A DNA stretch of 64,000 nucleotides, taken from NCBI GenBank assembly GCA_977016875.1, contig CDRNST010000082.1, positions 1,364,001 through 1,428,000 of the forward strand, in the 5' to 3' direction. Under the pieces are notes generated by a model, which worked only from the letters and a program-made list of their open reading frames with translations, made no database searches and was not told where the DNA came from. The DNA comes from Pavona decussata. Taxonomy: Eukaryota. Shown here piece by piece: positions 15,001 to 58,237 of the stretch; positions within the stretch are counted from its first letter, which is position 1, and each line of letters starts with the position of its first letter. The translations under genes were made by a program, and so were the position numbers.

Positions 15001-18000
15001 ATAATTGCCCTTACAACATAGTCAGATTAAACCTATTCACTCTGCAATCGTATTGTACAGTTTCCATTCGAATTGTGCTCGCTTAATTTTCATGAATAAT
15101 CAACGCATTGTAAAACTGTCTAAATGTGGTCATGGTACGCTCCGTATTCGTCATATCTACACAAAAGACATTCTACGATAAACGTTATGTCATGTGAAGG
15201 GGAGAAGATTGTTACAAATAAATACCATCTCCATCTTTTCTACAAATTAAACTTAGCTTTGCTATCAATATGTTGAATAGCAGAACAAGTATCCTCTTCG
15301 ATCTTGTGGAAAATGGTCTGATTTTTATCCAAGTGAAGCGATTTCGAAAGATAATTTTTAATTGTTGTTCACTTGGTGTATTTACACTCCTAAATGTTTA
15401 TGTCTAAAAGAAATGAGCCCCTGTCTCCGATAGGCACGCTATTGTTACGTCTCGCAACTCACATTGCAAACGGTGTAAAGTCACCTACGTCGGCGAAACA
15501 ACAGCTCCTGTAACTCATGAGGTGTGGAGCACATAGCGGGTACAAGATGAGACAACGATATCCACCAGGAATATTTTGACATATATTTAAAAACCCTGAA
15601 CAGTAGATAGAAATGCCTTATTTAAGCATAACATTCCCTTGAAAAATTCAATTAACGAACAAGCATCCCTGGGGACAGAAAGGCAATAAACACCTATGTC
15701 AGGTAGGCAATAAGCACTTATGTCAGACAGGCAATAAACACTTATGTCAAGCAGGCATTAAACACTTATTTCGGGCGGGCAATAAACACCTATGTCAACC
15801 AGGCCGTAAACGCCTATGAGGGTAAATTTTGCAAACCTCAGCATTCTGACGTAAATTCCCATACTCCTGTGCTGAGAAGGAAGCCAGCCTACTGCTGATA
15901 GATTGGGAATGCGGAAGCCACCGGAATGTGTCAATCATTGCCACTAACTCCACCCTTTGCTTCCGTTCCGTCAACAAGGAAGCCATTTCGTACGCGAGCA
16001 ACCCTCCGTACGAGTATCCACCGAGAAAGTATGGTCCATGGCGCTGCTCCTTGCGGATTAGTTTCACGTAATGTGTAGCAAGTTCACGAACTCCACCCCA
16101 GTCCTCACTCACTGCCGTTGGGTCGGTAAAGCCAAGTGCGTAGAAAGACACTAGATCCTACAAGTAAAGAAGAAATCAACTAAGTTAATTACTTGTAAAG
16201 TTATCAATTTCACAACCCGATATGAAATAACTGTAATTCCACGTTCGGTATGATTGGGTTATTACATTTCATGACATGGAATATGTGTTAAACACTTTAA
16301 AGTGTGTAAGAAATTCTAATCACACTCTCCTACTCTTATTTTACTCTAAACCGACAGGTTCGGTAAAACACTGAATTCAGCAGCAATCAACCTCATATGT
16401 TGGGCTATTACCTGGCCTTGAAATCCGGTGGATATAGGCACCAAGCTCATAGCATAGCGGTGTGATGGATGGACACAGAAGAACTTTATAGCTGAACCCT
16501 CGGGAGTGTAGAGCGGTATAACTTCTATCTGGCTTCCAGGCCCAGATGTATGCTTACTGGCCTCTGTGTGCGCATGCTCAAGTTCCAAGTTGTCACCATT
16601 TCCACGCTGCTCATTAGGCGACTGGCAATCGCTACCTCGTTTACTCAGAGAGGCAGCGATGTCTCTCGCGAGTTTCAATGGAGTGGTATCAGGTTGCATG
16701 AAGTAGAAAACCTGCAGCAACACATTTTTTGATCAGCTCAGATTACACAAAGTGTTTCAAATGTTCGTGCTCTCTGTCTACAAACGCAGGCGCTTCTCTT
16801 AATTAAAACTTGCCAAACCTCAATCCAGCAGAAAATCTCTGGAACATTATTAACAAGATTACATACACGGATTCAGTACCGAAACAATGGGGGAATTAAT
16901 TTGAATTCCTCTGTTGTCGAAAGTTTTCCCGAGGACAGTTCTACAGAAAATCAGTTTTGTCTCTTTCTGTGTGATTGATTCTGTTGTTTATCTTCGCCAC
17001 GTGTATTAATATGACGGACTCAGGCAATACTTACCTCAAAAGAGACTTGCAACGCTTTTTCAATGTTTGTTTTCATATTCACTGCAGCAGAGGAGTCCAC
17101 TCCGTAGCTGTACAAGCTCTTGTTTAGATCTGTCTCAGAAGGTGATGAAATTCCTGTCCATTCTGTTATTGCTACGCGAACATACTCGTTGACTAGCTCA
17201 GCTCTCTTTTTTTTATCCTTCTCCAGAATGATTCTTTGCGCCAGCGACTCTGTTGAGCTGATTGGATTGTCAAGAGTATTGATTTCCGCGGCGATGATGG
17301 ACAATCGAGGTGTTTTTCCCACACCTGGATTATTCTTTAGGTATCGCGGCCAATCTGCATCAAACAGAGCGATTTGACAACGATCTGGCTCCTCAGTTAG
17401 TACTTTGGCCATATATTTGGCCCCTGTAAGAAAAAAATCACAGGAAACAGGAACTATTACGGTCCCACTTTTACTAAACTCAATTACGCTATTGGCTCTC
17501 CTTTACAGCCCAACTCAAATACAATTGAAAAAAAAACTTTAAATATCTAACCGTACATAGTTAATCGATGGTCAATGAAACCAGTGAGTAATCAGCTGGT
17601 TAGTCAATGAATATTGCAGATAATCAATTATTAATTGATGACTAGTTAGGACAATAATTTTGTGGTCTGTTGATTATTCTTCGATGTGATTGATTAGTGA
17701 TGGATGTTATTTCAAATTTCTCATCGATTACCTATTGGTAATATTGTTGTCTAAAATGTCCAAGTACCCTTCACAACAGGAACAGAGGAACTTGGAGAAT
17801 TTTCGAAACTGAACAACCTAGATACCAGAGCATGAAGATTTGGTTGAGAGAAGTCAGCTAACCTCAACCGACGTCAGTAGGGTTATACCAATAATGTGTG
17901 TTGTTAATTCTACTTAACTAATTGTTCATGAACCGCGCAATTTTTTTCCGAAATCAATATAAAATGAGGTAAAATAATGTGATTTGTAGCCACGTGATGA

Positions 18001-21000
18001 CATCGATGAATGTACCCAAAGAATGAATTATCAATAATATCAACGACTAAGTCATTGATTATTACTCTTCGGTTATCGGTAATAATCAATTACTAATCAA
18101 CTGTTAACCCGTGGAATACTTATCATCGACTAGTTATCAGTCAGTGATGTTGTCTATTGGTTATATATACGCCTGGATCTAAGAAGCTATCAGCAGCCCA
18201 CCTTTAATGTCAAAGTTTAGAATGCGTTCGGTCTTTTTATCATTTGAATACACCAGCTACGCTGTTTTGCTGAGCTGGGTCTTCGCAATGCAGGACACAT
18301 CTGCAATTCTCGTGACTCAGTTCGATTGAAACAGAAATTCAGCAAAGTAAAACTGAAGTTAGTGTGGCAGGTACTCATTCCCACCATCGCACATTTTAAG
18401 TATTTTGCTTCTTATACGCAAAAGAAAAATGAAAGTTGGCGAAAAGCCCAAAAAGGAGGTGTAGAAAGGCTAATTTTAATTAAGAGTAGGGTAAAGAGGA
18501 TGTATTTGAAATTCTTATGTGTTACCTTTTTCTTTTTTTCAGTAAAGAGATCTAGCTTACCTTCTTTGGCATGTATAAAGCCCAATCCTGCCAAGGTCAT
18601 CAATTTAGCAATGCGAGTCTCTCTTTCCATCACACCAGCTCCACTGATTGCTCCCCAGTTAATTGCAAGACCCGGCAGACCGAGCACTTGTCTGCGGTAC
18701 TGGGCAAGAGAATCTTGGAAAGCGTTGCAGGCGCAGTATGACGATAGTCCCGGCGCACCCAAGAGCGCAACCATGGAGGAAAACATGACGAAGAAATCCA
18801 GATCCATTTCTAAACTCATTTGATGCAGCAAAAAAGATCCTAAAGGAAAAAAAATTAAGCTCTTTAGTAATACCTATTCATTGAGTAATGATTACTAAAG
18901 TGGTAACAGAGACTATTATACCAGGGGAAGAGCATTCGCGAACGAGCAACAGTGAAGGGTGTGCGACTTTCTCAGTTCAGTTTTGGCAAACTTTACTTCC
19001 CAAGGGTTTCAATGACCTCTAGCTTTTACTTCTTTGATCGAGAACAATTTTAAGATGTCACTCACAGATTCGACTCCCAGCTAATGGGAGAACTCGGATT
19101 TCCCTTTTCTTTTTCTTCGAATATGCCTGTACTGTCACCGGCTGACTAAACAATACATATCACTCACATTTATTTACCAGGGTGAAAAAATACCATCACA
19201 ATTTTTTTCATTGCGCATATGCCACACATCGACATTCAAATCCTAGCAGTATGCCAGATATTTATCACGTGAACCTAGTTTAATGGCCTTAGCTCACACT
19301 AGTCTCCTGTTGCTCAGTGGCAGAGCTTCCGACCTGGTAATCGGAAGGTCATACGTTCGATTCCTATTTTCCTTTTTCCGAATGTGCCTGTGTCACTAGC
19401 TGAAAAAAGTAAAAATAGCTCTCAAAGCTTGAAAATTAATCGTAAATATCGAGTTTTGTTTGCAAATTTCACGCCACTTAGAGGATTGTTCCAAGCGAGT
19501 TTGTCACGCAACTTGAAATGGCCATACGACATACAAGCACGCAAAAACAATTTTACCTTTGATTTTGGGACCCATGACATCACTGAAACTCTCAAATGTC
19601 AGATCTTGGATGAACTCGTCTCTAAGGACCATAGCAGTGTTTACGATGCCCGCGACACTTGGAAGAGTTTGAAGCTGCTTCTTGAAAGATGACATTTGCT
19701 CCTGGTTGGATATGTCAACCTGAAAAAGGAGATACGATTTCTCGTTTTATTATTATTTTTTTATTTTTTTTTTTTTTACCAAAACGAATTCCAGCTCTGC
19801 AAGCAGGGAAAAATCGCAAAGTAAACCGCAGTTGGTGAGCCAGGGACGAACTTCAAATGGTGAACATAATTAACGCAGAACAGTTGTTCAATTGTTCAAT
19901 CGTCTTGTTGAGAACGTCATCAAAAAGGGTGAGCTCAGGCTGTTAGTCTTTTTTCTTAATGTAAGGAACCTCTTCTTTACGACCCTTCTTTCTCTGCCAA
20001 ATCACTTCGCGTTTCGCTCTGTTCATAGCGATACGATTTGCTCCACAATGCTCCACCGTCTCCGACCTCTTTAAAACTCACATACATAAGTGCTGAGGTG
20101 ATGAAGTCTGGGCGGTAACCTGATATTTGATACCGTAGCATCTCGCGTAACCGCTGCCTCACACGCTACGGAATTTGAAAGGAGATAGACGGCGGTCTAA
20201 ATAACAAATAGCCGGATAGATACACTTTACCTACCTGAAAAGTATGAATTTTAGTTCCAGTCCTCTTCTCAATCAGCCACAGCTCCTGGCGTTTGGCATC
20301 TGAAGGTTTGGAGCGGCTAAGAAGGCCTATGGTCTTTGCTCCATTGTCTGCCATCCAGCAAGCAACTTCAAATCCAAATCCTCCCAATCCACCTGCTACC
20401 AAGTAAGTCCTGTTGTCTTTCAGGCCACATTCATCAAGCCCTTGCCGAAGCACTGCAATGTCCTGAAGATGACTTTCTTCGTCAAATGTTGCAAGCGATT
20501 TAATTGATAATGAAAGGTCTGAATATTCTTCCACTTCGTGTCTTCGAGATGCTTTTCTGTCCGTTAACCCATTGGCAGCTCTGATTGATGATACTAAGTC
20601 GGCAGACTCAATTTTCATTTCCAGTAGCTGTTTAAGAACGCCTTTACCTTCCATCATTTCGAGACTCTCCAAAGTGAGTTTCGCGAATGCTAACGGAACC
20701 AGAAGAATGTCTGATATGTCATTTCTCAGGTATTCAACATTCTTGTTTGCCGGAAAAACAACGTCACCATAAAACTGAGCACTCAAAACAATAACTCTTC
20801 CTCCTTTCTTGAGGCTATGACCACTTCTATTGAGCGCATTTGGAGATGGTGGTGAGAAAAATATCACGGCATCAAACGGGTCTATGGAGTCATCCTTAAG
20901 AAGAGGGGATGACTGTCGCTTCACACTCTCCGCACCCAAACTGAAGAGAAGAGTTTTCGTGGATGTTTTGCAGGTGTCGGAAATAGTGCAAGATACCCGG

Positions 21001-24000
21001 TGACCCAATGTTTTTCCGAGGACTATTGCTGCAGGCCCAGGCCCAAGGTTAGCTTCATGTATCAGCAGTTTCTGATTTTGTGCACCCGATGTTGCTCTTT
21101 GAAGACCATACAAGGCTATGGACAGGCATGCAGGGATGCATGTGGCTTGTTCCTTTGTCAGACTGGCTGGCTTTAAAAATGCGTTCTTCGCGTCTATGGG
21201 AATGGAACGTCCAACACGTCCAGATTGAATAACACCACACACTTCGTCTCCAATCCGTAAATTATGCTGGCTCTTTTCGGGTAGATGAGTCACGTTTCCA
21301 GATACAAAGACACATCCGTTTGGTTTGGATAATTCATGCAGGGATTCTGAAAGGTTCCAGCAATAGTGGACATCTATCAAGACCTCCGAGTGTGATGGCC
21401 TTGAACAACTCCGTTCGCGCAGACACAGTGTTCTTGATGATGGTATAGTTGACAGGTAAAGTGATCCAATTTTCTTGTGGCCATCTTTGACTGTTAATGC
21501 AGATTTCTTCTGGTGTGGAGTGGACCTCAAAAGGCGATTTGTGAATCGTTTTCCACCTTGAAAGGCCACCTCGTCCTCAATGCTGTCACATAGGATCTCA
21601 CTAACCAAGGAATCTAATTCCTGTTGATCCTCTTTATTGCACAGATCAACAGCTGTAACCCTAATATTGAATAGTTCATGGTCTGTGGTTCGCCTTAGTC
21701 CCCACGCTGTAGACCCCCAGGGAAAGGATGTCATCTTGAGAGAATTTCCATAGTCATGCAACAGCTGTGTACACTCAGTAACGAGGAAAAGACGAGAATC
21801 GATTGACTTTTTTTCCACTAACTGCCTCAGCAGGAAGGCGGAACTTCTGAAGACAAGGTGTTGTGCTTTTTCAATAACTTCGAATTTGTCCGGAAGAAGT
21901 GAAGCTTCCAGAGGCCAAAGGTTGATAACCCTCAATTTGGATAAATTGTGCATTGGTACGTCTGAAAGGACTGCTAGTATTGCGTTCTCGGCATCTTCGT
22001 TAAAACAGCTACCATCTGGTGGATTAACGGTGATGACATTGACTTCCGCGGAATGAAGTCTTGCGACTAAATTGTCCGAGAAGCTGGATGAGTCTTGCAG
22101 TACTATACAAGTCAGATGTGTGGTGCTTTCACGTTGGCCCTTCAACTCTTCTTCCTTCCAACGGACTTCATATGCAAGTTCATCAAAGGCAAGTTGTCGC
22201 CGCGCTGAGCTTGTTAACTCTGAAACTCGAAAGTCATTCATTGTCAGCAAAACGCTGCCGGATGAACTCATGAGTGTGACGTCAAATCTTCCAAACTCAG
22301 TCGCATCTGAGACGACGTGGCAGTACAACTGACTGGTCGTTGGCACATCATACAGGATAATGCTTTTGAAACCAATGGGCACAATGGGTTTGTCAACAGT
22401 TAAGAAGCTAGCCAAGGGAACGAAACAAGATTGAAGACAGGCGTCTAATATGGATGGATGGACAATGTAACTTACAGTTTCTTCTTTAATGGTGTCTGAC
22501 TCACTGATGTCAACTAGGCAAAGTCCCTCGTTATTACGTTTCCATATCGCTTTGATGATGGAGAACGTAGGTCCGTACTTGAACCCACACTTCTCTGTTA
22601 TTTCTTTGAACTGTTCCATCGGCATTTTTGTCATGGATGTTATGAGCTCATTTACAACTGGGCCGACTTCAGTGGAAGCTAAAAATACAGAAAAGCAGTA
22701 ATTACTTACATTTTAAGGTTTATGTTATTATTATGTCACAATCTCGTAAAAAAGATTCCAACTGGTTATTTGCAAGTACGTCTCAGAGTATTACGTTGAA
22801 TTGTTTTAGAGGAGTGCGTGCCTTAGATATCATACCATCAAAACTTTTTAGCACTTTTCAATAGCTATACAAGAATTTTAGAAATAAAAAGCGATACAAT
22901 ACATTTCAACAAGTTGAGGAAGGCGTCCTATGTTTTCTTATCGGAAATTGCTTTATAATATCTCCTCTAAAGTTTAAAATTTGAATAAAACTAGTCTTAA
23001 CAGATTTTAAGTGATAAATATTTTTTCGTTTACAGTAAACGTTTTTATGTTATCTTATCTAGATTAGAACGTTTTGTCTAGTTCATTAGTTTAATCAATT
23101 TTGAAGTTTAATTAATAAGTCATGATCCGCAAACGTGAGCGATTATTATCCATTCATTTTCTTAACTTCTATCTAAATTACAGAGAATTATTTTTTCATG
23201 ACACCGAAGTAAAAACTTAATTTTTAATTTCCCTCTTCCTGTACTTAAATCTTAAAATTTTACAGGAAGGGCCAGTTGCAACGATTTTAGATAGGAGTAC
23301 CAGCCTATCGTGGCCATTCAAGAGAATTCGCCACTTCTATATTTCAGCCGAACGCCTTCATTCATAATGACTGAAAATGAACAATAGGGAAGTTCCAATG
23401 AGACAGTACCTTCCTTCCTGAAATTTTCGTGTTTCTGCAAAAGATCCACAAAAATACTTCCAGTGCTTAGTTTCAACTCAGAATTGTCATCCTGTACACT
23501 TGTAATTTGAAACTGGGCCTTGTCAATGCTGTCCGACTTCAGAAGACGCAGTCGTAAAGACCGCACCTGAAATACCAGTGGACCAATAAAAATAAATTAG
23601 CCAAAAAGCAACCCTGTAAACACATTCCAGAAGAAGGAACAAAGGGTTTATACTCAAAGCCTATATATGTCGGTTCTGACGTGGAAGTGATTCAACAATA
23701 AAGCAACATATGAAAGAGGAGTAAAAACCTATATAATAAAGAGTAAGGACGCTTCTTTCCTGCTCTAAAGGCTACTCGGGCATACTAAAATGAACAAACC
23801 GCCCTAATTGATTATTGAGCAAACTGTGTACTGAACATTATTTACCTTTGTTTCGGGCAGTGTCAAAAGGCTCAACAGTTTCACATCACTTAGTTCTAGG
23901 CCGGCAACGTCCACGAACTTGTCCCTCACCATCGCAAAGGCCATTTCTAGGTACGCAGCTCCTGCCATCACGGCACCACCTTGAATAAGAGCATGATCCT

Positions 24001-27000
24001 TGATATGTGGAAAACGGTGGAGGTCAATTTCAGTTTCCCAACAATGCAGGCCTGAATACAATTCAGTCATCCTTGTCTTTTCCAAAAACGGATGGGTTTT
24101 GCTGGTTGTGCGTTTGTCACCAATTAAAATTGGTATTGTGGTTTGGGGTGGCGATTCCCTGTACCAAAAGCTGTTTTGCATCCATGGATAAGTGACGGAA
24201 CGAACAAACTTGGCCGATTGATTGTTCTGCACACATGCCCACTCTATGGGAAATCCCTGCGTATATAATTTGCACACGGTGTTCAGGAGAAACGTCCTGT
24301 GCTGGTCACTGACAGGTATTCTTTTACTTGGAAGAGTTGCGAAGACAACTGGCACTGCCCCGTCTTGAAGTTTTTCTTGCATAGCGATCTGTTTAACGTA
24401 GTGGGATAAAATCGGCTGCATGCTTATCTCTATGATCTGCTTGTAGCCGTCCTTCAGAAGATGCTTCACTGCAGGGAAGAACTGGACTGGACAGCGAATG
24501 TTTCGCCACCAGTAATCGCGGTCCAACTGTTCACCAGAGATGACTTCACCTTCCACAGTAGAATACATTGGAATCTTCGACAGCTGAGGTTTCAACTTCA
24601 TCTGCTTCGTTGCGGCTTGAAAAGGCTTCCTAATACATTCCATGTGTGAACTGTGAAATGCACGTCTTGTATCCAGAATGCGCCAGAAAGTCTGATTGGA
24701 GTGGATGGCTAAATGTTTTCCGAGTTCTTCGATTGACTGGGAATCGCCAGCCACCGTTACACTATTTGCATCATTTACTGCGGCGATGCTAAGCGAGGAG
24801 TTTAACTTCAGTTCTGTCATCAGAGACCTGGCGCTTTCTTCTGACATGCCCAGTGCAGCCATACCGCCGTTATAGGGACATTGATCTTGCAAAGTAGAGC
24901 GAGTCAATACCAGCTGAACAGCTTCCTTGAGGGTAATAATCCCAGCTATACAAGCGGCTGCAAATTCTCCCAGACTGTGGCCAGCAACGGCGGAGGGATG
25001 GATTTTCCAAGACATCAGAAGTTGTGCAGTTGCATATTGTATAGCAAACGTCGCCGGTTGAGCAATGGAAGTTTCTGAGATCCTTGATTTGCCTTCTGTA
25101 ACCATGAGCTCATCCATAAGTGACCAAGGCTTCCCCAAGTTTCGCACTAACTTACTGACGGTTATAATGGCCTCTTTAAAAACAGGCTCAGTTTCAATAA
25201 GTTGCCTCCCCATGGCATACCACTGGGACCCCTGTCCACCGAACATGAAAACTACTCTTGGGTCGGAGGACCTCACTTCGCCATGGGAAACCAGTTTTTC
25301 CACCCCAGTGGAATTATCAGCGTACTGTGTTAGGTACTCGGATGCCTCAGAAACAGTTCCGAAGGGAAGTGCCAGGCGATGTAGGAATTGACTGCGGCGT
25401 TCGTTCAAAGAATAGCATAAATCTTCTACGAAGGTCTTATCCACATTCTCGCGTTTGTCTTTAAGCCATTCGGAGTAAAGCTTTGCCATCCGCTTCAGAG
25501 CTTCTTGTGAACGGGCAGACATAGTGAGAACATGATTTAGACGTGGAGCCTTGTCTTCTTCAGAACGTTGCTGTGATGAAACTTCCTTACAGATAGCGTG
25601 TACATTAGAACCACCGAAACCAAAGGAGTTCACAGCAGCTATACGTGGTTTCTCATTTTCTGTGATCCAAGGCTCGTTGCTTTGTTGAACGACAAGTCCT
25701 CTCTCTTCTAATTTCAGCTTGGGATTCAATACATGCACGTTGACAGTTGGGACAAATCTCTTCTTTTTAATCATCAAAGCGACTTTGATAAGTCCAGCCA
25801 GCCCAGAAGTAGATTCCGTGTGATTTAGGTTTGACTTCACAGATCCAATTCGTAGCTTTCGTATGGGGTTTTTAGTTCTTCTGGTGTAAGTGTCTGCTAT
25901 TGAAGCAACCTCTATCACGTCTCCAATGGCAGTACCAGTTCCGTGTGCCTCAAAGTAATCCACGTCTTCTACACTCACGCCTGACTGCTCGAGAACCATT
26001 CTTGATAGTTCAGCTTGTATCTTTGCACTTGGAGCCGTTATTGGCACAGCATTTTTACCATCGCTGTTCATACCACAGCCAATTATGTGGCAATATTCGT
26101 CGTCTTTGTCACTCAAAGCTGCATCGGAAAGCTTAAGAATGACAGCTGCAAATCCTTCTCCCCTTCCATAGCCATTTCCAGAAGCATCAAAGCTCTTTGA
26201 GCGCCCATCAGGTGCCAAAAGACCAGCCATGCTAGAAACCATTTGCACGCAATAGTTAATGACAATGTTGGGTGCGCAAACAATGGCTACATTGCAGTCT
26301 CCGTTGTGCAAGTTATCGCATGCAAGTTTGAGTGCAGTCAAAGATGAAGAGCATGCAGTATCAACTGCAATGCTTGGTCCTGTTAGGTTTAGACAAAAGG
26401 AGACTCTGTTGGCGAGAATTGATCCTGCCATTCCTGTTGATGAAAATTTGTCGATTCTCTGATAATTTGATGGGTCTGATACCAGATGATTTCCGTACTC
26501 TAGAGTCATTACACCGACAAAAACCCCTGTTTTGCACTTCTGAAGATCCTCGAGCCTCATTCCAGCGTCCTCAATGGCCTCATACACGACCTCAAGGAGA
26601 ATTCTTTGTTGAGGATCCATCCCACGAGCCTCCTGACTAGATATACCAAAGAAACTGTTGTCAAAAGTTTGGATTTCTTCCAGGTAGGACCCATTAACTG
26701 CACAGTGGCGTCCACTAACGAAGCGCTTGGGGTGATAATACTTAAAGAAAGTCTCATGCAAACCCGCTCTGTTCTGGGGAAATGCTCTGATCGAACTCTT
26801 CCCCTGTTCAAGTAAATTCCAAAACATATCCTTGCTGTTGGCTCCAGGAAACCTGCAACTGATGCCAATGATAGATAGTGCAGGTCGCTTTGACTTGACC
26901 TGTCGTTGTGGTGCGTCGCAATCTGGTACTTTAAGGTACTTTTCCTGCATTCCTTTCTTAACATTAAGCAGTCTGTTCAATTCATCCTCAGCATAAAATT

Positions 27001-29497
27001 TGTCAATAACGTCGAAGAATAACGTGACAACAGGCGGGAAAATTACGAAAGCATGAATAAGTCCAAGGGCAAACACCAGAGGGACGAGTTGGAAGAAAAT
27101 ATCTTGGAGACTTGGATAAATAAACCCTAGTGATAAGGATCCAGATATCTCCAGTAATGCTGCTGCTATTACGGGCCCCGAAACAGCGTAAAAAGTTTCA
27201 ATTGTGCGCTGGGCGATCTTCTGCTTTCCTGAAAATGTGAACGAATAGGCCATTTGAAGGCTAAAATTGAGGGCCAAGACAACTGAAAAGACCAAGGAGA
27301 TAAAGGAAATGGGATTGAGGTGAATTCTGCAGGCCTCCATAATGCTCACTGTCTCAAAAACAAGTAGGTCAAATGTTACTGCTAGGTAAGCACTAATCCA
27401 AAAACTTGAGCTTGAGAGCAAACAAAATACAAACACAACAACGGAGGCAGTAACAAGAACAAAAACTGCCTCTTTCTTCAACAAAAACAGATCATCAATT
27501 TCAACAAATTTCTCAGAGACCGGTGCAGCCTTCAATGAAGATGGCGTGGATAACTTCTCTCTTAGTTTCTCTAATGCTCGCCTATCCCCTTTAAAGTGGT
27601 TGTGCAGTACCATATGTAGACGGATACGAGATGCCATTAGTCGGAAATGATAGTCTTCAAAACGTACGTCTCGTTGATAATAGACGCTGGAGGGTTGATT
27701 AAGAAAACTTTTCAAGCACAGGTAGAATTCTGAATTCAAGCAGCTAGTGTTCTGTTGCTTTGCCCAAAGTAGTAAAGCAACCATCCAACACGATGATTTT
27801 CTGTGACTATAGGAAGCCTCCCCTAGAGTTCTACAAATGGTGATGATTTCATTCTGCACGGTTTGGTGTGAGTATTCAACCTTCTCAGAGAAAACGATGC
27901 TCACGTCGGTTTCGTTTCCAAAAAAATTTTCTTGGGCTTCATTAAACTTTCTAAAGTTGTCATCTCGCTGATAAAGGTTTTGAGTGGTTCCCGCTCTCCC
28001 TCCAGATCGTGAGACAGAAAGCACACACAAACTGACTATGCCAGCCAGAATTATGACTGCAATGACTTTACCAGCAAGTGACATTAGCATCTTAACAACG
28101 CTTTCCCGAAAGGTTCGAAGTGTAACTTGTAGTTGTTGTATGGGTCCTCCGCCGAAGCTTGTAACGCTAACGAATGGTGATCGTCTACTACAGGAATGCA
28201 AACACAAAGTTTTAGCTGACTGACTCTTTAAGGACGATACCAAAGTGACCGTTATCATGACAGATGCAACCGAAACAAGAACATAAGCTACCAGTGCCAC
28301 GAGGAAGAACCTTGAAATCACTTCAAACGAAGACTTGATTACAATTCCTAAAAGAATTGTTCCGCACAATGATGACAATACGTGGACGATCCCCGCTCTA
28401 GTAACGCAGCTGCTGACTCGATGTTCAAGCGATTTTATTTCCTTTTGCCGCTCCCATTCTCCTAAGAAGAGAATTACGTCTGACGCTACCTTTCCCAATA
28501 GCAGAAACGGAATGAACAACGTAGTTGGAGAAAGGGAAATACTTGCCATTGAAACAATACCAGCAAAACACAGCAGGGGTGACAGAACAGACGAGAATAA
28601 AAGAAAGACGGTTGTAAGGCAATTAAGAATTGTAGAAGAAAAATAGGTAACAGCAAACGCTAATGCAATCATTGCAAGTGCTGATAAATAAGGCAATTTC
28701 AGCTCCAGTTTCAGGACGTTTTGCAAAACGTCTGTTTCTGCTTTTCCAGTCTTAAAGGAGAGCGATGCACATTTTAAGCGGTGGCGTATTGACAAGACGA
28801 GACGCTCAAAAGATCTTTCAAAGCTAACGACTTCCTGGTCTTCTTCGTCGGTGGTTGCCTTTCTGAGAAAGTAAACGATTCGAAGAGCATCAGCCCGGGC
28901 CGTTAAAGGATCTGTTTTGTTTTCTACTCGAAAATTACTGATCATCTCCCGAAAAGAAGATTGACCAGTTTCACTACCTGGCAACGCTCTGGTAATTGTC
29001 GATTTTTTAACCAGAATAGAAGAAAGGTTGCTCAGATGTTCAAAGTGATCGCCAGCGAACTCCAAAGGGCTGCTGATAACACAGTCTTGCTTGACCGACG
29101 TTTTGCTGGTGTTTTGTGGAACCTGTTGCCTAAAACATAACTTTTGGTAACCGCTGATGTTCAAAACAGCCTTGTGTACGAAAATTGCGTCTTTCAAACA
29201 ATCTCCAGTTAAGATATTTTGGCCATGTTTAGCAGTCATTATGATTTGTTCCCGCCTTGCTTCAAGTAGTGGGAAGAATTGCGCTGCATGGCTTAAGTCT
29301 TGCCTGGACTGGCTATCAATCACGGTGAAATGTTCAACCGAAGGCTTTTCGATACTAACACGACTCAGTCCCAGACAGCATGTAACAACAACAATAAGAG
29401 AAGCTATTAAGATAGCCGATGGTCTTCGAGCTAGAAAAAAGCCGAATTTCTCGAACAAGCTTTCGTAGCCAAAAAGGATTCTGTAGCTAATTCCCAT
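11574..29497 (-). CDS. Copy A: Patched/sterol-sensing 12-TM domain fused to a type I PKS/FAS-like synthase (KS-AT-DH-psiER-KR-ACP-TE) with a PH-like C-terminus; about 3535 aa
   Basis: Hand-spliced GT-AG exons, all phase-compatible: 29497-23846, 23566-23410, 22678-20235, 19719-19557, 18839-18561, 17423-17035, 16711-16412, 16157-15837, 14831-14601, 13828-13507, 12719-12591, 11794-11574. Motifs: KS DTACSSS / EAHGTGT / NLNHTE; AT GHSLG / RAFHS; DH DHALIQGGAVM and HPSILDACLQ; KR GGLGGFG, VLRD, YCACN; ACP GVDS; TE GYSYG, MID, GDHY. The true start codon is uncertain. Confidence 0.92.
11931..12041. repeat. (AAT)n microsatellites
   Basis: Two TAA runs at about 11931-11960 and 12011-12041, in the last intron of copy A. 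Confidence 0.85.
12011..12280 (-). mobile_element. Probable LINE 3' end (stem-loop, AATAAA, (ATT)n tail)
   Basis: Minus strand reads ...ggtgtccactattagtagaggggacttcttccctcagctac...gacacgttaataaagttattattatt. The 5' boundary is approximate. Confidence 0.45.
15681..15820. repeat. 24-bp minisatellite, about 6 copies, in intron 8 of copy A
   Basis: Contiguous units of aggcaataaacacYtatgtcaRNN with no spacers. Confidence 0.9.
19065..19400 (+). mobile_element. tRNA-derived SINE-like repeat (1.5 units)
   Basis: A-box tgctcagtggcagagc, stem tccga..tcgga and B-box gttcgattcc at 19303-19366. The tail (cgaat.tgcctgt) is repeated at about 19118 and 19380. Confidence 0.55.
23846..26880 (-). other. KS-AT and start of DH of copy A (same exon as the membrane domain)
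   Basis: LSIIGISCRFPG, MDPQQR, DTACSSSL, GYGRGEG, EAHGTGT, NSFGFGGSNVH, FGGQGSQW, GHSLGE, RAFHS, HPFL...DHALIQGG. Confidence 0.95.
27010..29497 (-). other. Patched/NPC1-like (SSD, RND-fold) membrane domain of copy A
   Basis: Hydrophobic pattern 1 TM + large Cys-containing loop (YQKLC..CVISSPLEF) + 5 TM + 1 TM + large loop + 5 TM. The last helix, LGLIHAFVIFPPV, resembles Patched-family TM12. Confidence 0.85.
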
Positions 29498-29703: not shown

Positions 29704-30580
29704 TTCGATTCAATTCGTTTATTTTGCCACTAACCAAAAAATACAACATAAATACATTATAGACGACACACAATATTCTTACTATTACAATGTTCATACT
29801 TAACTATTTACAATATTAAATGTGTTAAAGGCTAGGAAGCCTATATAGAAGCCGGGGGCTTATTAACTAAAGGCTTCCTAGAACTATAGGATAAACCATA
29901 GAAGTTAAGGGTACTGATTGAAAATTCCAATTAATTTTTTTTAAAAGAAGAAAAAAAAAAAGAAAGAAAGAAAAAAAGAAAAGGTAAAGAAATGCGTGCG
30001 TAGTTTAACTAAGAGTCAATTTAACTTAGAAAGAAGGAATTTAAGTCTTTTGCCAAACAAACTGATACTTTCACTGTTTTGAATTTCACGACTTAGCGAG
30101 TTGAAAAACGTAGGACTTTGAAACCGAATTGAGAATTTTCGAAGATTAGTTCGACAATAAGGTATATAGAAAAGGTTGGAATTCCTTGTTTTATAAGAAT
30201 GTATTTGGCTTGCAATAGTAAACATATCACGAAAATAATTTGGAAGTAAGCTTCTTTTAAAAAGATTCATAAATTTACCTATTTGGTATAAATAAATGTC
30301 AGAGAATTTTAAAATCTCCTGTTCTTTAAAAAGAACACCGGTATGAGCATCAAAAGAAACTTTTGATATTATTCTGGTTATCTTCTTTTGCAGAACAATA
30401 ATGCGATTTAAATGAGACTGATATGTCGATCCCCACACAGAAACACAAATTAAGTAAGAGTAAACTAGACTATAGTACAAGGAACGTAAGGAGGTTTTGG
30501 GGAGGCAAAAACTAGACTTATAAATAATACGTATTGATTTTGATATTTTTCTAGAAACACTAAGAATGTGAGGCTACCAT
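29704..30580 (-). mobile_element. 5'-truncated LINE (CR1/L2-like): RT C-terminus and 3' UTR
   Basis: ORF 30016-30480 (YYSLVYSYL..SVWGST..LNRIIVLQKK..RII...FSIRFQSPTFFNSL) is typical of the RT C-terminal region. The 3' UTR has a GGAAGCCT..AGGCTTCC stem-loop, AATAAA and a short tail. Confidence 0.85.
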
Positions 30581-49900: not shown

Positions 49901-52900
49901 TCTCCTGATCCACTCCTGACCTCAAAACGCGATTAATGAATCGTTTTCTTCCTTGAAAGACCACCTCATCTTCAGCGCTGTCACCGAGGATCTCTTTAAC
50001 CAAGGAATCTACTTCTTGTTGATCCTCTTTGTTGCACAGGTCAACTGCTGTAACTCTCACATTTAATTCTTCAACAATTGCAGTTCGCCTCAGTCCCCAC
50101 ACTGTCGCTCCCCATGGAATGGACACCATCTTCAGAGACTCACCACAATCATGCAACAGCTGTGTACGCTCGGTGACGAGGAAAAGTCGAGCATCAATCA
50201 GTCCTTTTTCCAGTAGCAGCCTCATTAAGAAAGCGGAACTGCTGAACGCGAGGCGTTGTGCTTGTTCAATGACTTCGAAATTGTCCGGAAGAAATGATGC
50301 TTCCAGAGGCCAGAGGTTGATAATTCTCAGGTTAGGTAAATTCTGTGGTGGCATGGCTGCTAGGGTTGTTTCTATTGCTTCTTCTGCTTCTCCGTTAAAA
50401 CAACTACCACTTGGTGGTTCCACGGCGATGATATTGACTTCTAGAGCTTGAAGTCTCTTGACTAAACTGTTCGAGAAACTGGATGAGTTCTTAAGTACCA
50501 AGCATGTCAAATGTGTAGTGCTTTCACCTTGCCCTTTTAGTTCATCTTCCTTCCACTGGACTTCATACTTAAGTTCAGCGAAGGAAAGTTGTCGTGGTAA
50601 TTCTGTTAACTCTGTAACTCGAAAGTCGTTCATTTTTAGCAAAACGCTGCCAGTTGGACTCATGAGTGTCAGGTTGAATCTTCCAAATTCAGTGACGTCT
50701 TTGACGACGTGGCAGTACAAGTGTTTGGTTAATGGCACGTCATTGAGGGTAATGGTTTTGAAACCAACTGGCACAAGGGATTTTTCACCAGATAACGAGC
50801 TTTCCAGCGTAATGAAGCAAGATTGAAGGCAAGCATCTAAAATGGAAGGATGGAAAACATAATTTCCCGTTTCTGCTTCCATGTTTAACGACTCACCTAT
50901 GTCAATCAAGCAGAGTCCCTCGTTTTCAAACTCCCAGACCTCCTTGATGATGGAGAAGGTAGGTCCATACTTGAAACCATACCTCTCTGTTGTTTCTCTG
51001 AACCGATTCATTGGCACTTTCTTCATGTTTGTTATCCGCTCTTTTATGGCTCTGCCAACATCATCGGAAGCTAGAAGCAAACGAAGCCAAGATGTAGCTA
51101 ATTTGATCATTTATGCAGTGTTTAACCATCGTTTGAACAATTTCCGGCACTTTTTGGAAACGTGCAAGCACTGTGCCTTAATACGAAATAGAACCATGTG
51201 GATAGCATTGCAAGATATTAGGTTCACGTTATATTCTGAAACCACGAAATTTTAAAACTTTATTTTAACTGAGGAGTAACTGTGTAGTTTATCTACATTG
51301 TCTCAGCTTTTCATCAGAGTTGGCTATGACATCAAATTAGGAAGAGAGAAGCTGTTGAAGCAGAGAAAGAACTCTTCGCTTAAGACTCAAGACCTGAAAG
51401 CACTGAACTACTTGAAAGCATGGTTGTACAGACCTAATCCAACCACCGTCAAGTCATCAAAATTTGTTAGGGGAACTAGTTTGTAAGAAATTGTTGCGCT
51501 GTTTTCATGAGGGAGTGGTAACAAATATTTGCTTTTGTTAGCTGAATTGATGAGATTATTTTGCCAACGCTTTGAGATTCGAGCTGACGTTTCTTGCGCC
51601 TGCCCTTAATCAGAGCGAATTCGCTACGATGAAGGGGCAATGCTCGAAAAACCAACTCTCCAATCTTTTGACGGTGGCCAAATTACCTTATCAACTTAGT
51701 GGATAAAAGCACATATTTTTTTTTTTTGTTTGTTTCAGTGGAGCGCAGCACAGCCAATGACCACCCAGTTGATTATGGACACATTGACGTCACAGCCAGT
51801 TACTTTCTGCCCGAGGGAGTGTTCTTTAATTTCGTCTCCAAATTTGACATACGATTACTTTATCAGCATTTCTTAGGTACAACTTTAACTCATCTGACCT
51901 GTTTATGAAACGAATACAACGCGCCTACGACGCGAAGTGTGCAAATGAAACCTGTATCTTGTAAATGGGACAAGGTTGAAAAGTCTGCGATGAAGTTTTG
52001 GGTTTAAGTCACGAGACCCTGAGAAGAAGCAGATGCCACTGAAATGGAAATGACGATCTACAGAGTAATAGTACCTTCTCTCTCACTCATCTCGTGTTTG
52101 CACAAAAGATCCACAGAGATTCTCCCGCTGCTTAGATTAACCTCGGAATGATCATCCTGAATGCTTGTAATGTCGTACTGTGCCTCACCAATATTCTTGG
52201 TCTTTTTAATACGTAGTCTTAAAGATCGAACCTATAACAGAAAAGATAACGACAAATTTTAGCCGAAATCCCGACTGTTGTACAAATAAATACAGAGAAA
52301 ACGTAGGAGAGGAGTGACCCGCGAAATAAGTTACGAAGTATGAAAGAACAGTATATTAGGTTATGACGGGCAGCTTAAACACACTGGGATGCTTTTCTTT
52401 GTACTTAAATATTTTCTATTGTAGGAAGTCTTTTTGGCATTCATACTTTATTTATTCACCTGTGTTTCAGGTAATGTCAGAAGGCTCGAGACCTTTACAT
52501 CACTTAGTTCCAAACCAGCTACCTCCACGAACTGGTCCTTCGCCATCGCAAATGCCATTTCCAAATAGGCTGCTCCTGGCATCACGGGTCCTCCTTGTAT
52601 AAGAGCATGATCTCTCAGATTTGGAAAGCGATGGAGATCAATTTCAGTTTCCCAGCAGTGTAAGCCTGAACAGTGGTCGGTCATTTTCACCTTTCCTAGA
52701 AAAGGGTGAGTCTTGCTCTTAGTGTCTTTGTCTTTACCGAGAGGAAGGATTGTGCTTCGGGGTGTATGATCTCTGTACCAAAAGCTACGTTCCAACCATG
52801 GATAGCTCAGCGAGCGGATAAACTTGGGTGAAGGATTTCTCTGTACAAAGGTCCAGTCTATGGGATATCCTGTCGTGTACAATCTGCATACTGTATTCAG

Positions 52901-55900
52901 GAGAAAGAACTTGTGCTGTTCATTGACAGGCACTCGTTTACGAGGGAGAGTTGGCAGGACAACTGGTATTGCTTGGTCTTGAAGTTTTTCTTGCTTAGCA
53001 ATCCGTTTGACGTAGTGGGCTAAAATCGGCTGGGTGCTGATCTCGATGATCTGTGTGTAGCCATCTTTCAGTACGTTCTTCATGGCTGGTTGAAACTGGA
53101 CTGGACAGCGAATGTTGCGCCACCAGTAATCACAGTTAAAATGTTCACCTGAGATGATTTTACCCTCAACGGTAGAGTACATCGGAATCTTGGACAGCAA
53201 AGGTTTCAACTTGACACGCCTTATGGCTGCTTGAAACGGATTCTCAATAACCTCCATGTGTGTGCTGTGAAATGCACGTTTTGTTGCAAGAACACGCCAG
53301 AAAGTGTCTTTAGAGTGAATGGCTAAATACTGCCCAAGGTATTCAATTGACTTGGAATCACCAGACACTGTGACACTCCTTGCATCATTAATTGCGGCAA
53401 TTTCAAGTGTTTGGCTTAACTTCAGCTCAATCAGCAAGTTTCGAGCCTCTTCCTCTGACATGCCAAGAGCAGCCATACCCCCATTATTGGGACATTGATC
53501 CTGGAGAGTAGAGCGAGTCAAGACCAGCTGAAGGGCTTCCTTAAGGGTGATAATTCCAGCAGTACATGCAGCTGCAAGCTCACCCAAACTGTGCCCGAGA
53601 ACAGCAGATGGATAGATTCTCCAAGACATCAACAACTTTGCGCACGCATACTGTACAGCAAACGTGGTAAGTTGAGAGAGGAAAGTTTCCGCGATTATCG
53701 ATTCGTCCTCCGATGCCATGAGTTCATCTATAAGTGACCAAGGCTTTCCTAAATCTCGAACTAATTTGCTGACTGTTAAAATGCTTTCTCTGAAAACAGG
53801 CTCTGATTCAACAAGCTGTCTCCCCATTGCGTACCATTCAGAACCTTGTCCTCCAAACATGAACACAATTTTAGTGTTGCAAGACTTCACTTCATCGTAG
53901 CAAGCCATCTTTTCCCACCCGATGGATCCATCTGCGTAGTCTGACAGAGCCTTAGACGCCTCGTAAATAGATTCGAAAGACAATGCCAGGCGGTGGGAGA
54001 ACTGACTGCGACGTTGGTTCATTGAATAGCAGAGGTTTTCTACAAACCATGAGTCCATATCTTCGACGCCATCATTAAGCCACTTGGAATAAAGGGTTGC
54101 CATTCTCTTCAGAGCTTCTTGGGAACGTGCAGAGATAGTGAGGATATGATTGAAACGTCGGACCCTGTCTTCCTCAAACGTTGGCTTAGTTATTACTTCT
54201 CGAAGGATGACGTGTACATTTGAACCACCGTAGCCATAGGAGTTTACAGCAGCTATACGTGGTTTCCCATTCTCTGTGTTCCAAGGCTCGCTGTCTTGCT
54301 GCACAATGATTCCTTTCTCTTCCAACTTCAGTCTTGGATTCAATGTGTGCACGTTAACAGTTGGCACCAGCATTTTCTTCTTAATCATCAAAGCGACCTT
54401 AATAAGTCCAGCCAAGCCTGAGGTAGATTCAGTATGGTTGAGGTTTGATTTAACCGATCCAATTCTTAGCTTTCGTGTGGGGTTTGTATTTCCACGGGTG
54501 TAGGTCTCTGCAATTGAAGTGACCTCTATCACATCTCCAATGGCAGTACCAGTACCATGTGCCTCAACGTAGCCCACGTCAGCCGCAGTTACACCAGATC
54601 TCTCTAAAACCAACCTTGCTAGTTCAGCTTGCAACTTTGAGCTCGGAGCCGTCATTGGTATGGCATTTTGACCATCGTTATTCATTCCACAAGCAATTAT
54701 CTCGCAATATTCATCATCTCTGTCACTCGCAGCAGCATGTGAAAGTTTTAGAATAACTGCTGCAACGCCCTCGCCCCTTCCATAGCCGTCCCCGGAAGCA
54801 TCGAAACTCTTACAGCGACCGTCAGGTGCCAGTAAACCAGCCATACTGGATACTACCTGTGTGACGAAGTCTAATACGATATTAGGTGCGCAAACAATGG
54901 CTATATCGCAATCCCCGTTGTGCAGACTATCACATGCAAGTTTAAGTGCAGTTAAGGACGAAGAGCAGGCTGTATCAATTGCGATGCTTGGACCTGTAAA
55001 GTTTAGACAGAAAGAAACTCTATTGGCGAGAATAGAGGCTGTTATTCCAGTAGAAGAAAACTGGTTGATGTTGTGATAATTTGATGGATCTGTTATCAGA
55101 CCTCCGTAATCTAGATTCATCTGCCCGACAAAGACACCTGTTTTGCACTTCTGAAGCTCCTCAAGTCTCATTCCAGCGTCTTCAATTGCTTCATACACAA
55201 CTTCTAAGAGAATCCGTTGTTGAGGATCCATTGCACGAGCCTCCTGGGTAGATATACCAAAGAAATCATTGTCAAAAGTTTGGATTTCTTCCAAGTAGGA
55301 GCCATGGACGGTACAAAGTCGCCCACTAACAAAGCGCTGGGGATGATAATGTTTGAAAAACATTTCATGTTGTTCCACCCTATTTCGGGGAAATGCACCA
55401 ATAGAATTTTTTCCCTCCTCGAGTAGATTCCAAAACAAGTCCTTAGTATTGGCTCCAGGGAACCTGCATCCAATGCCAACGATTGATATGCCTGGAAATT
55501 TCGGCCTTAGCTGCGGTGAGTCACCTCCCACTACTTTAAGCGGTATTTCCGGCTTCTTTAGTTCCATTTGTATGTCCTCTTCACAACTGAATAATAAGGT
55601 GATCATTGGTGGCAAGATTACAAAAGCATTGATCACACCAAGAACAAGAACAATAGGTATGAGTCGAACGAAAATGCCTTGTAGAGCTGGATAGATAAAC
55701 CCCAATGCAATTGAACCACTTATCTCCAGCAGAGCTGCAGTTAACACAGGCCACGCAAACGAGCACAAAGCTGTGTTAATACGTTCTCTTACTTCTCGTT
55801 TTTCAGATAATACAATAAAATAAGCCACTTGAAGACTGAAGTTGAGGGCCAAGACAATTGTGAAAAACAACGAGATGAAGGAGATATGGTTCAAGTGAAT

Positions 55901-58237
55901 TCCCCACATCTTCATAATTCCTGCTGTCTCCAAGACGAGAAGTATAAATATTATTGTTATGCAAGCACTGATCCTGAAGAATGAGCTTGAGGTTAAACAC
56001 AGTACAAAGAGTACCACAGTGGCAACTGCGAGATCGAAGACTACTTCTCTTTGCAACGAAAACAGGTTATCAAGTTCAAAAAATGTATCCGACACTGGCA
56101 CAGCTTGAAGGGAAGGTTGCGTTGACAAATCGTGTCTCAGTTCTTCAAGGGACTTTCTATCTTCTTTAAAGCCGTTGTTCTGTGCCATCTTGGCATGAAT
56201 ACGAGAAACACTAATTTGAAGCCGGCCATTATTTTCTTTAAAACGTACGTCTTGTTGAAAAGGGAAGTTGCTTGATTTATTAAAAAACAAGTCCAAACAA
56301 CGGTGAAATTCTGAATTTGAGCAGCTCATATTATGGTCTTGTCCCCATTGTAGTGCATCTGCCATCCAACAAACTGATTCCTTGTGACTGTATGAGGCCT
56401 TACCCAACCTTTTACAAATGTTTACTAGTTAATTCTGCATAGTCTCTTGTGAGTAGTCAATTTCCTCAGAAAAAATTATGCTCACATCAGTTTCACTTCC
56501 AAAGAACTTCTGTTGTGTTTCTCTGAATTGGTTGAAGTTGTGATTTTCTATATCAAGGTTTGCTGTGGTACTCGTTCTCTCTCCTGGTTGAAAGGCAGAC
56601 AACATACTCAAGGAGAAAATGCAGGCCAAGAGAAAGGAAGAAAACACTTTGTTAGCACGTGACGTTAGTATCTGACTAACGTTCTTACGAATAACTCTCA
56701 GTTTAGTGATAAGTTGTCTCATGAGTGCCTGCCCTGGCGTTGTGGTAAATGGTGAGCTTCTACCACAGGACCTCGCACATGACGTGTCTAATAACTTCAA
56801 CTGCTTCTCTAGAGACAATAATAAACTGACAGTTACTATCAAAGATGCAACCGAAGCAAGTAGATAGGCTACTAACGCCGCCAGGAAGAACCTTGAAATA
56901 ACTTCAAATGAGGACTTGATTGCAATTCCAAACAGAAATGTTCCACAAACCGATGACAATACGTGACAAATTCCCACTCTGACCACACAGCTGCTGACCC
57001 GGTGTTCAAGTGATTTTAGATTCTTTTGCTGTTTCCATTCCGCTAAGAAGAGAACTACATCTGATGTTATTTTCCCCAACAGCAGAAAGGGAATGAACAA
57101 GGTTGTTGGGTAAAGAGAAATGCCTGCACTTGAAAGAATGCCTGCAGCACACGTCAGGGGTAACACAACAGACAACAGTATCAGTAAGACTGTTGTAAAG
57201 CAGCTGAGATTGTAGGAAGTAAAGTATACAACCATTAAAGCAACAAGACCCATTATTAAAGCTGAGAGATAAAGTGGCTGTAATTCTGGTTTCAGTACGT
57301 TTTGAATAGCATTTGTTGTTGCTGATCCAGTCCGTACGGAGAGAGAAGCACAATCTAGCCGGTGTTTCACTGATGAAACTTTGCTTTCAAAAGATGTTTC
57401 AAAGTTGAAAACTTCATGATCTTCTCCATTCGTTGGCATTCTAATAAAGTAAATTAGTCGAATGGCTTCAGCATGGGTAGTAATTGGATCTGATCGTGTG
57501 TTTATCTGAAAGTTGCTAACCATCTCGTTGAAAGAAGAATGGAATGATTGACCGGTAGAAAGTACGGCCCTGGGATTTGTCCACTCACGAGCCAGTATGG
57601 TAGACAGGTTGCTCAAATGTTCAAAATTTGTACCAGCTAGCTCCAAAGGACTATTAATAACGCAATTTTGTTCGGCGAGTTTTTCAGTTGCTGTTTGTGG
57701 AGACAGATGTCTGAAGCATAACTTTTTGTAGCCGCTAATGTTTACAACAGTCTGATGTACCAGAGCGGCTTCTTTCAAACAGTCTTCACTGAGGACGTTT
57801 TGACCTTTTTTAGGGGAGATGATAATCTGCTCTTGACGAGCTTTGAGAAGTGGAAAGAATTTAGCTGCATGAAGCAGATCATTCCTGGACTGGGCATCAA
57901 ATTTCGTGAAGTGGTCACTGGAGTGTTGCTCAACCCTTAGACGAAGAAAACCCAGGAAGCTTGCCGCAGTAACTGTCAGAAAAACTAACAGGAGAAATGT
58001 TGCTTTGCGAGCTAGTAAAAAGCCGAATTTCTCAAACCCTTTCTCGTAAAGAACAAGGATTCCGTTGGAGATGGTCCTTTGCCCTCTTGTAGAAGAGCCA
58101 CAACCAAGGCGACGTCTTGTATTTGCCCCATGAATGAAGCAAGACCTGTTCACGAAGACACGATTAATTAGATTTGTATACGTGCATTGTTTAGAAACGT
58201 TTGTGCTAGCATCTAATCCGGGACCTAAACTGTTCAT
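40902..58237 (-). CDS. Copy B: paralogous Patched/SSD-PKS-TE-PH fusion gene with a single in-frame TAA at 56431-56429 (null allele, recent pseudogene, read-through or sequencing error)
   Basis: Exons 58237-52460, 52231-52075, 51070-48636, 48376-48214, 47662-47384, 46960-46572, 45899-45594, 44678-44361, 43836-43606, 43337-43016, 42572-42444, 41122-40902. Phases are the same as copy A and most exon lengths are identical (157, 163, 279, 389, 231, 322, 129, 221). Catalytic motifs retained: DTACSSS, EAHGTGT, GHSLG, HALIQGGPVMP, LDACLQ, GGLRGFG, YSACN, GTDS, GYSYG, GDHY. Confidence 0.88.
41702..41847. repeat. Small inverted-repeat element (mini-MITE)
   Basis: agattcacgaaaccctcctcagttaagatg pairs with catcttaacttaggaaggtttcatgaatct. 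Confidence 0.6.
45055..45116. repeat. Strong hairpin/palindrome in intron 7 of copy B (probable transposon terminus)
   Basis: gtgttttatcggg.ctaaaaccac - loop - gtggttttaaatcccgataaaacac. Confidence 0.7.

Follow-up and report, generated by a model that had tools for sequence, protein, structure and literature searches.

Two tandem polyketide synthase (PKS) genes of the coral Pavona decussata, copies A and B, encode between their dehydratase (DH) and ketoreductase (KR) a domain that keeps the predicted fold of an enoyl reductase (ER) and has probably lost its catalytic function. Both genes lie on the minus strand of a 64,000-nucleotide stretch (the window; positions 1,364,001 to 1,428,000 of contig CDRNST010000082.1, here C82) of the 602-Mb genome. 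The architecture read from their sequence is that of an iterative type I PKS with a Patched/sterol-sensing domain (SSD)-like membrane domain, ketosynthase (KS), acyltransferase (AT), DH, psiKR (the structural KR half), ER0, KR, acyl carrier protein (ACP) and thioesterase (TE), where ER0 stands for a structurally kept, catalytically dead ER. It is probable that the domain is such an ER0, that it serves as a scaffold and that the synthase makes an unsaturated or polyene-type product. The ER0 concept and its chemical consequence are already known. What is new is a full but apparently dead ER fold in a clade of cnidarian synthases whose published domain list has no ER (bioRxiv 10.64898/2026.04.08.717340); the list should be amended by a complete ER fold, kept as a probable ER0.

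The relationship of the domain to ERs is seen in sequence and in predicted structure. Searches were run on one exon at a time and not on a joined, spliced protein. In a phmmer search of the PDB, the 316-residue ER-like stretch of copy A matches the ERs of mycocerosic acid synthase (MAS; E 7e-7), CurK (2e-6) and human fatty acid synthase (FAS; 1e-4), with those of CurF, JamJ and PpsC in the same range of 7e-7 to 7e-4. The whole product of the exon that encodes it, the second long exon of the gene, is colinear with MAS across DH, psiKR and ER (E 6e-24), and the ER-fold domain occupies the canonical slot between psiKR and the catalytic KR. The distance from DH to the ER-like domain is only about 235 residues, again colinear with MAS, which points to a MAS-like layout (DH-psiKR-ER-KR) without the pseudo-methyltransferase of the FAS type; a Pfam scan of the exon product at E<=0.01 gives no methyltransferase match. 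By these sequence matches the ER-like domain is homologous to the ERs of PKSs and FASs. An AlphaFold2 (AF2) model of the domain, computed from an alignment of 76 rows (pLDDT 92.3, pTM 0.91), contains both a GroES-like lobe and a Rossmann lobe, so that the two-lobe fold of the medium-chain dehydrogenases/reductases (MDR) is predicted to be kept. The top Foldseek match of this model is the ER of CurK (5dp1; E 6e-19, TM 0.74). The ERs of CurK, MAS and JamJ are found at E 6e-19 to 3e-16 and TM 0.70-0.75, and quinone oxidoreductases (QORs) are also among the best matches.

Pfam models do not recognise the domain. No match is found between DH and KR in the second-exon product, and the ER-like regions of A and B yield no match to the ADH family even at E<=10, the stretch scanned for copy B being 48990-49925, which is in frame and includes the Rossmann part. 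The active ER P0015, included as a control in the same scan, matches the ADH_zinc_N families with 78-79 bits. Absence of the domain, as this silence would suggest, is rejected, as the phmmer search of the PDB and the fold search both reveal a domain of the ER type.

Alignment with active ERs had been proposed as a check by an earlier, sequence-only reading of this DNA. A MAFFT alignment that sets the domain beside 19 relatives from its family and 56 active ER or QOR domains, drawn from a search of 1.84 billion representative proteins, reveals that five ER signatures are lost together in the coral domain: the Gly loop, TAGSxxK, LNFRD with the loop next to it, the Lys of EIGK, and HxGK. The Gly-rich loop HxxxGGVGxAA has become HEANLGPGPAA in A and HQANRGPGPAA in B. 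The sequence-only reading had reported the altered loop in both copies, and translation gives the same result (LLIHEANLGPGPAA in A, LLIHQANRGPGPAA in B); its sites were right, with each span one base off (21068-21028 for 21027-21068 and 49464-49422 for 49422-49463). The first Gly of GGVG is present in 89% of the 56 active domains. It is replaced by Leu in A and by Arg in B, and the family as a whole has R, K, S, L or T at this position. The Val is Pro in both copies and P, L, A or M across the family. TAGSxxK contacts the 2'-phosphate in MDR enzymes; in the coral domain it is replaced by CTISDTCKTSTK with a three-residue insertion.

The remaining signatures belong to other parts of the domain. 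At the position of G[LIV]NFRD copy A has WNLSES and copy B WSPSQS, and in both a deletion has removed about 12 residues from the next loop, GxYPG. The Asn and Asp of LNFRD are found in 98% and 100% of the active set; the family conserves neither. The motif had been described as absent; it is indeed lost, though by erosion and not as a clean deletion. The Lys of the EIGK motif (K1771 in pig FAS), a proposed proton donor, corresponds to Ala in A and to Ser in B. Among PKS-embedded ERs, 30 of 33 have Lys at this position and the other three Arg, compared with no Lys in any of 16 family members (A, S, E, C or G instead). This is the residue by which the ER of LpaA was called inactive (PMC7473843). 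The C-terminal HxGKxVL motif, whose Lys is 98% conserved in the active set, is lost as well. The degeneracy that had been noted in the loop and in GLNFRD thus goes further, to the K1771-equivalent Lys, TAGSxxK, HxGK and part of a substrate-lobe loop. Within the degenerate loop there is also a polymorphism: in one run (X6) a G>A change at position 21028 converts the last Ala of the loop to Val (GPGPAV).

Several observations weigh against a dead ER. The loop retains two of its three Gly as G-x-G, and the coral copies still have the Asp matching D1797, although it is not conserved family-wide; together they may permit an unusual cofactor-binding mode. The identity of the ER proton donor has been left unsettled by the mutagenesis studies cited in PMC5369529, so the loss of the Lys alone is not decisive. 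Three-quarters of the AF2 alignment consists of active ERs, which biases the model towards an ER-like structure, and both the inactivity of the domain and the type of product are read from sequence. Finally, some of the residues of the 316-residue stretch whose conservation is specific to the family (W42, N145, R253 at 100%, F266, D204 and P212) coincide with former cofactor or substrate motifs. Such residues could belong to a filled, stabilised cleft or, contrary to a purely structural role, to a new binding function. The G-x-G, the Asp near the D1797 position, the kept MDR fold and purifying selection are also what an ER still active with a non-canonical NADPH site would display. That the domain is such an enzyme is nevertheless extremely unlikely: five independent signatures are lost together, a bulky Leu or Arg stands at the pyrophosphate-contacting Gly, two Pro have entered the loop, the combination occurs in 0 of the 56 active ER or QOR domains compared, and the Pfam models fail on the domain.

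The loss of the signatures is not accompanied by a loss of constraint. Pairwise dN/dS among five C82 paralogues (Nei-Gojobori, a simple estimate) is 0.28 for the ER-like domain and 0.18 for its Rossmann part; the values for the DH C-terminal half, psiKR and the KR N-terminus are 0.24, 0.32 and 0.15, respectively. Constraint on the ER-like domain equals that on the neighbouring non-catalytic parts. The window sequence is present in coral metatranscriptomes, and RNA contigs from two runs of the same species have joints at the copy A introns 18840-19556, 19720-20234, 22679-23409 and 23567-23845. All four introns are GT-AG on the minus strand, and the contigs therefore derive from spliced RNA. They span 20324-21908 without a break, which places the ER-like region within the mature message of copy A. 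A pseudogene is rejected for this copy on account of its spliced transcripts, its open frames and a dN/dS well below 1. The ER-like domain is maintained as a folded module and is hence best read as an ER0 and not as a decaying remnant.

What the module is maintained for could extend beyond scaffolding. One reading, itself very unlikely, is a new non-redox role such as binding of the acyl chain or another ligand, docking of the Patched-like domain, or action as an isomerase or a cyclase-like chaperone. Family-specific residues stand at former active-site motifs (Trp for the Gly of GLNFRD, HEAN before the loop, the invariant R253 beside the D1797 position, and F266), the dN/dS of the Rossmann part is the lowest of the non-catalytic parts, and CurF offers an ER fold with a changed reaction, though one that still uses NADPH. 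Conserved bulky residues in the old cofactor cleft are, however, equally expected from the mere stabilising of an empty fold. A more specific proposal, decidedly unlikely in its turn, makes the domain a module that was remodelled to bind a ligand or a partner and that is found only in the cnidarian synthases fused to Patched. Its old NADPH/substrate cleft would have been rebuilt around family-invariant residues, namely Arg253, Phe266, the HEAN-R/K-GPG loop and the Trp that replaces the Gly of GLNFRD. Such a cleft could accommodate the unsaturated chain as it grows, or could serve to dock the synthase to the transporter domain in its own membrane part, for direct hand-over of the product into the membrane.

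The altered motif extends far beyond the two copies of the window. Six paralogues on C82, within 1.25-1.70 Mb, all have the loop LLIH[EQ]AN[LR]GPG[PT]A. A seventh, L007 (C56:1349035-1352883), is 30% identical in the ER-like region and has the loop LLVGDTNSGLGMV, in which even the His of the LIH motif is lost. It groups in the tree with P0009, near the Nematostella branch, which indicates at least two old subfamilies in this coral. Among the 1.84 billion representatives, all 24 close relatives that cover the loop have the same loop type, HEAN[RKLST][GSDE][PLA]G. They include XP_048589011 of Nematostella vectensis, whose cluster mate XP_032237653 is 2693 aa long. A distant family member (23% identity) adjoins a 1823-aa KS-AT-DH product on its own contig. 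Recurrence in all paralogues and relatives means that the shared loop change is no chance match.

In a maximum-likelihood tree the 15 family rows fall on one side of a single branch with an SH-aLRT support of 100. This stem is 1.56 changes per site long, compared with a median of 0.54 for the terminal branches. The tree comes from a quick IQ-TREE search with SH-aLRT support only, and the fragments shorter than 240 aa (P0010, P0021, P0023, P0024 and P0026) were omitted. The simplest reading of these sequences is that the ER signatures were lost in one old event in hexacorals. The sequence-only reading had placed the change before the duplication that gave A and B, and in doing so understated its age: the change is older than the divergence of the subfamilies, and Nematostella has it too. 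One paralogue, L005 (C82:1443473-1447408), differs in another respect. The frame of its ER-like exon stops before the KR N-terminal part and gives 752 aa, compared with 832-853 aa in the others, which may reflect a frame break or another splice site.

The other catalytic domains appear intact. The KS of both copies has DTACSS, EAHGTGT and NLNHTE, and the AT has GHSLG and RAFH. In the DH, the His lies in DHALIQGG and is joined by the DxxxQ motif in HPSILDACLQ and by YGPTF. The KR has GGLGGFG or GGLRGFG, the B-type LRD motif, the Lys in GPKIK, and FSS...SSYxACN. The B-type KR (K/S/Y/N) and the DH (His, DxxxQ) thus look competent, and the earlier claim that their catalytic residues are kept agrees with the motifs located in both copies. 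The AT had been called malonyl-type from RAFH; the motif is there, but the label leans on bacterial AT rules, which do not predict the substrate in animal PKSs (PMC11831141), and the choice of extender is therefore left open.

A KR and a DH that act without an ER leave olefins, which is an established rule. In the proposed mechanism the ER-like domain would no longer bind NADPH or reduce enoyl thioesters and would act as a scaffold of the modifying region. Each round that uses KR and DH would leave one trans double bond, since both of these domains look competent. Where reductions are skipped, as happens in EcPKS, ketone or pyrone features would arise. On this mechanism the synthase would release an unsaturated or polyene-type polyketide, perhaps bearing such features, and not a saturated fatty acid; an unsaturated or polyene-type product is likely from the domain content. 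Saturated acids of the coral would be supplied by separate FAS-like genes. Two such genes, divergently oriented on contig C354, serve as an internal control within the same genome and keep the ER motifs (LIHSGSGGVGQAAI, TTVGTKEKR, GRFLEIGKYD and GILLDA).

A saturated or partly unsaturated product would nonetheless result if the cis ER were dead and a separate trans-acting ER, an MDR protein like LovC, reduced some or all of the enoyl intermediates. The precedent is LovB/LovC, where polyene pyrones are made only by a synthase that lacks its partner (discussed in PMC7280274). Free MDR genes are present in the genome on contigs C331, C19, C45, C118, C54 and C10. The PKS cluster at 1.25-1.70 Mb contains no match to ADH_zinc_N or ADH_zinc_N_2 (PF00107, PF13602), the nearest on C82 lying at 264 kb. 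This is a weak argument, as animal genes need not be clustered and an exon-by-exon search can miss genes. Reduction in trans is considered unlikely. An ER0 without such a partner narrows the chemistry to be expected from an old, multi-copy, membrane-anchored PKS family of corals and sea anemones to unsaturated or polyene-type lipids in place of saturated fatty acids. It could also lead to a natural product such as a pigment, a sunscreen, a signal or a defence lipid. Since the underlying principle has long been accepted, this is a helpful addition to the annotation and not a surprise.

ER0 domains have been characterized in other iterative synthases. For EcPKS1, an ER0 deduced from sequence was later confirmed biochemically (PMC7280274). 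EcPKS1 and EcPKS2 produce polyenes in vitro, and their structures contain an ordered ER0 without active-site residues (PMC7280274, PMC11831141; PDB 9CQ1, 9CTK). These sacoglossan FAS-like PKSs resemble the coral synthases in being animal iterative type I enzymes with an ER-fold domain devoid of NADPH-site and active-site residues and with a KR and a DH, which work there and are predicted to work here. In contrast to the coral family, with its MAS-like layout lacking a pseudo-methyltransferase, its TE and its N-terminal Patched-like domain, the EcPKSs follow the FAS layout, include a methyltransferase that is inactive, and carry neither a TE nor a membrane domain. Sequence similarity between them and the coral exon product was seen in the KR alone. 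The label AFPK (animal FAS-like PKS sensu Lin et al. 2024) is rejected for the coral genes, as they have no pseudo-methyltransferase and follow the MAS-like layout.

In fungi, LpaA and PPS1 have an ER0 with the Lys changed to Gly and make polyenes, LpaA alone being sufficient for them; as with EcPKS1, biochemistry bore out what had been deduced from the LpaA sequence (PMC7473843). LpaA, PPS1 and LovB share with the coral synthases the order KS-AT-DH-...-ER0-KR-ACP-TE, a replaced Lys (Gly there, Ala or Ser in the coral) and an ER judged to be structural. These fungal highly reducing PKSs are soluble and have an active methyltransferase. Motif loss goes further in the coral domain, extending to the Gly loop, LNFRD and HxGK. 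The best sequence match over DH-psiKR-ER (E 6e-24), with the same order and spacing, is provided by MAS and MAS-like PKS with an active ER (PDB 9D2Y, 5BP4), which is also among the top structural matches. In contrast to the coral domain, which has none of these motifs, the MAS ER has LIHSATGGVGQAAI, TAGNPAK and EIGK and reduces in every cycle.

Another close group is the cnidarian Patched-domain PKS clade of a 2026 Palythoa preprint, which separates the cnidarian PKSs as a distinct clade and lists patched, KS, AT, DH, KR and TE, and no ER, in hexacorals (bioRxiv 10.64898/2026.04.08.717340). The window genes fit this clade, with an N-terminal Patched/SSD domain together with KS-AT-DH-KR-TE. They differ from its description in holding a full-length degenerate ER-fold domain between DH/psiKR and KR. 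In the literature on coral PKS function or on an ER in this clade, only the domain list of this preprint was found.

The window has a G+C content of about 39% and few long open frames. In each PKS copy a very long first exon encodes the Patched/sterol-sensing-type membrane domain, KS, AT and the start of DH, and a second long exon encodes the remaining DH and the start of KR. The rest of KR, the ACP (GVDS in A, GTDS in B) and the TE (GGYSYGG) follow in downstream exons. One open exon of 1897 aa carries the Sterol-sensing/Patched matches together with KS-AT-DH, with KR, ACP and TE in exons downstream. The second-exon products of A and B are 67% identical. The coordinates are collected in Table 1.

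Table 1. Features of the two PKS copies in the window and of the FAS-like genes on contig C354
Feature	Position	Strand	Remarks
Copy A, ER-like (MDR-fold) domain, 316 aa	20535..21482	-	Probably catalytically dead (ER0), judged from its residues
Copy B, ER-like domain	48939..49874	-	68% identity to A
Copy A, Gly-loop remnant LLIHEANLGPGPAA	21027..21068	-	Active ERs: LIHxxxGGVGxAA
Copy B, Gly-loop remnant LLIHQANRGPGPAA	49422..49463	-	By translation
Copy A, LNFRD remnant WNLSES	21342..21359	-	Compare G[LIV]NFRD; about 12 residues of next GxYPG loop deleted
Copy A, codon GCT (Ala) at K1771-equivalent	20778..20780	-	Pig FAS K1771, EIGK motif, proposed proton-donor Lys
Copy A, first large exon	23846..29497	-	Patched/SSD-like membrane domain, KS, AT, DH N-terminus (catalytic His); 3' splice end from RNA contigs, 5' end is first ATG of open frame
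Copy A, small DH exon	23410..23566	-	RNA joints; copy B equivalent 52076-52204
Copy A, exon with DH C-terminal half, psiKR, ER-like domain, KR N-terminus (GGLGGFG)	20235..22678	-	Flanking GT-AG introns 19720-20234, 22679-23409; Pfam PS-DH and KR
Copy A, middle KR exon	19557..19719	-	B-type LRD motif, catalytic Lys in GPKIK
Copy A, KR C-terminal exon region	18415..18839	-	Ser, Tyr, Asn in FSS...SSYCACN; Pfam KR positions 119-179, E 4e-18; splice joint from RNA; 3' end unmapped
Copy A, open frame with ACP (GVDS)	17023..17502	-	Frame limits, not exon ends
Copy A, open frame with TE nucleophile (GGYSYGG)	15798..16157	-	Frame limits, not exon ends
Copy A, long open stretches	23804-29497; 20166-22634	-	
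Copy B, long open stretches	56432-58237 with 52451-56407; 48615-51110	-	
FAS-like ER exons	C354:1382242-1383363; C354:1426825-1427811	-; +	Canonical motifs kept (GSGGVG, EIGK, ILLD)
FAS-like KS	C354:1402128-1402838; C354:1416857-1417567	-; +	

Copy B has a lone in-frame TAA at 56429-56431 (-), within the Patched-like portion of the first exon; the corresponding codon of copy A encodes Glu (QNEII, compared with QN*LV in B). Apart from this codon it is open, and its first exon is 62% identical to that of A. The TAA could be a nonsense allele, the mark of a young pseudogene or an assembly error, and on its account copy B may be a pseudogene. Inside the KR intron of copy A, the contig word depth in two coral metatranscriptomes sums to about 19,600-26,800 over the stretch 19182-19378. 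Many short contigs end within this stretch, which points to an element that is either strongly expressed or highly repetitive. A 154-aa open frame at 30016-30480 (-), between the two PKS copies, resembles, as judged by eye, the C-terminal tail of a retrotransposon ORF.

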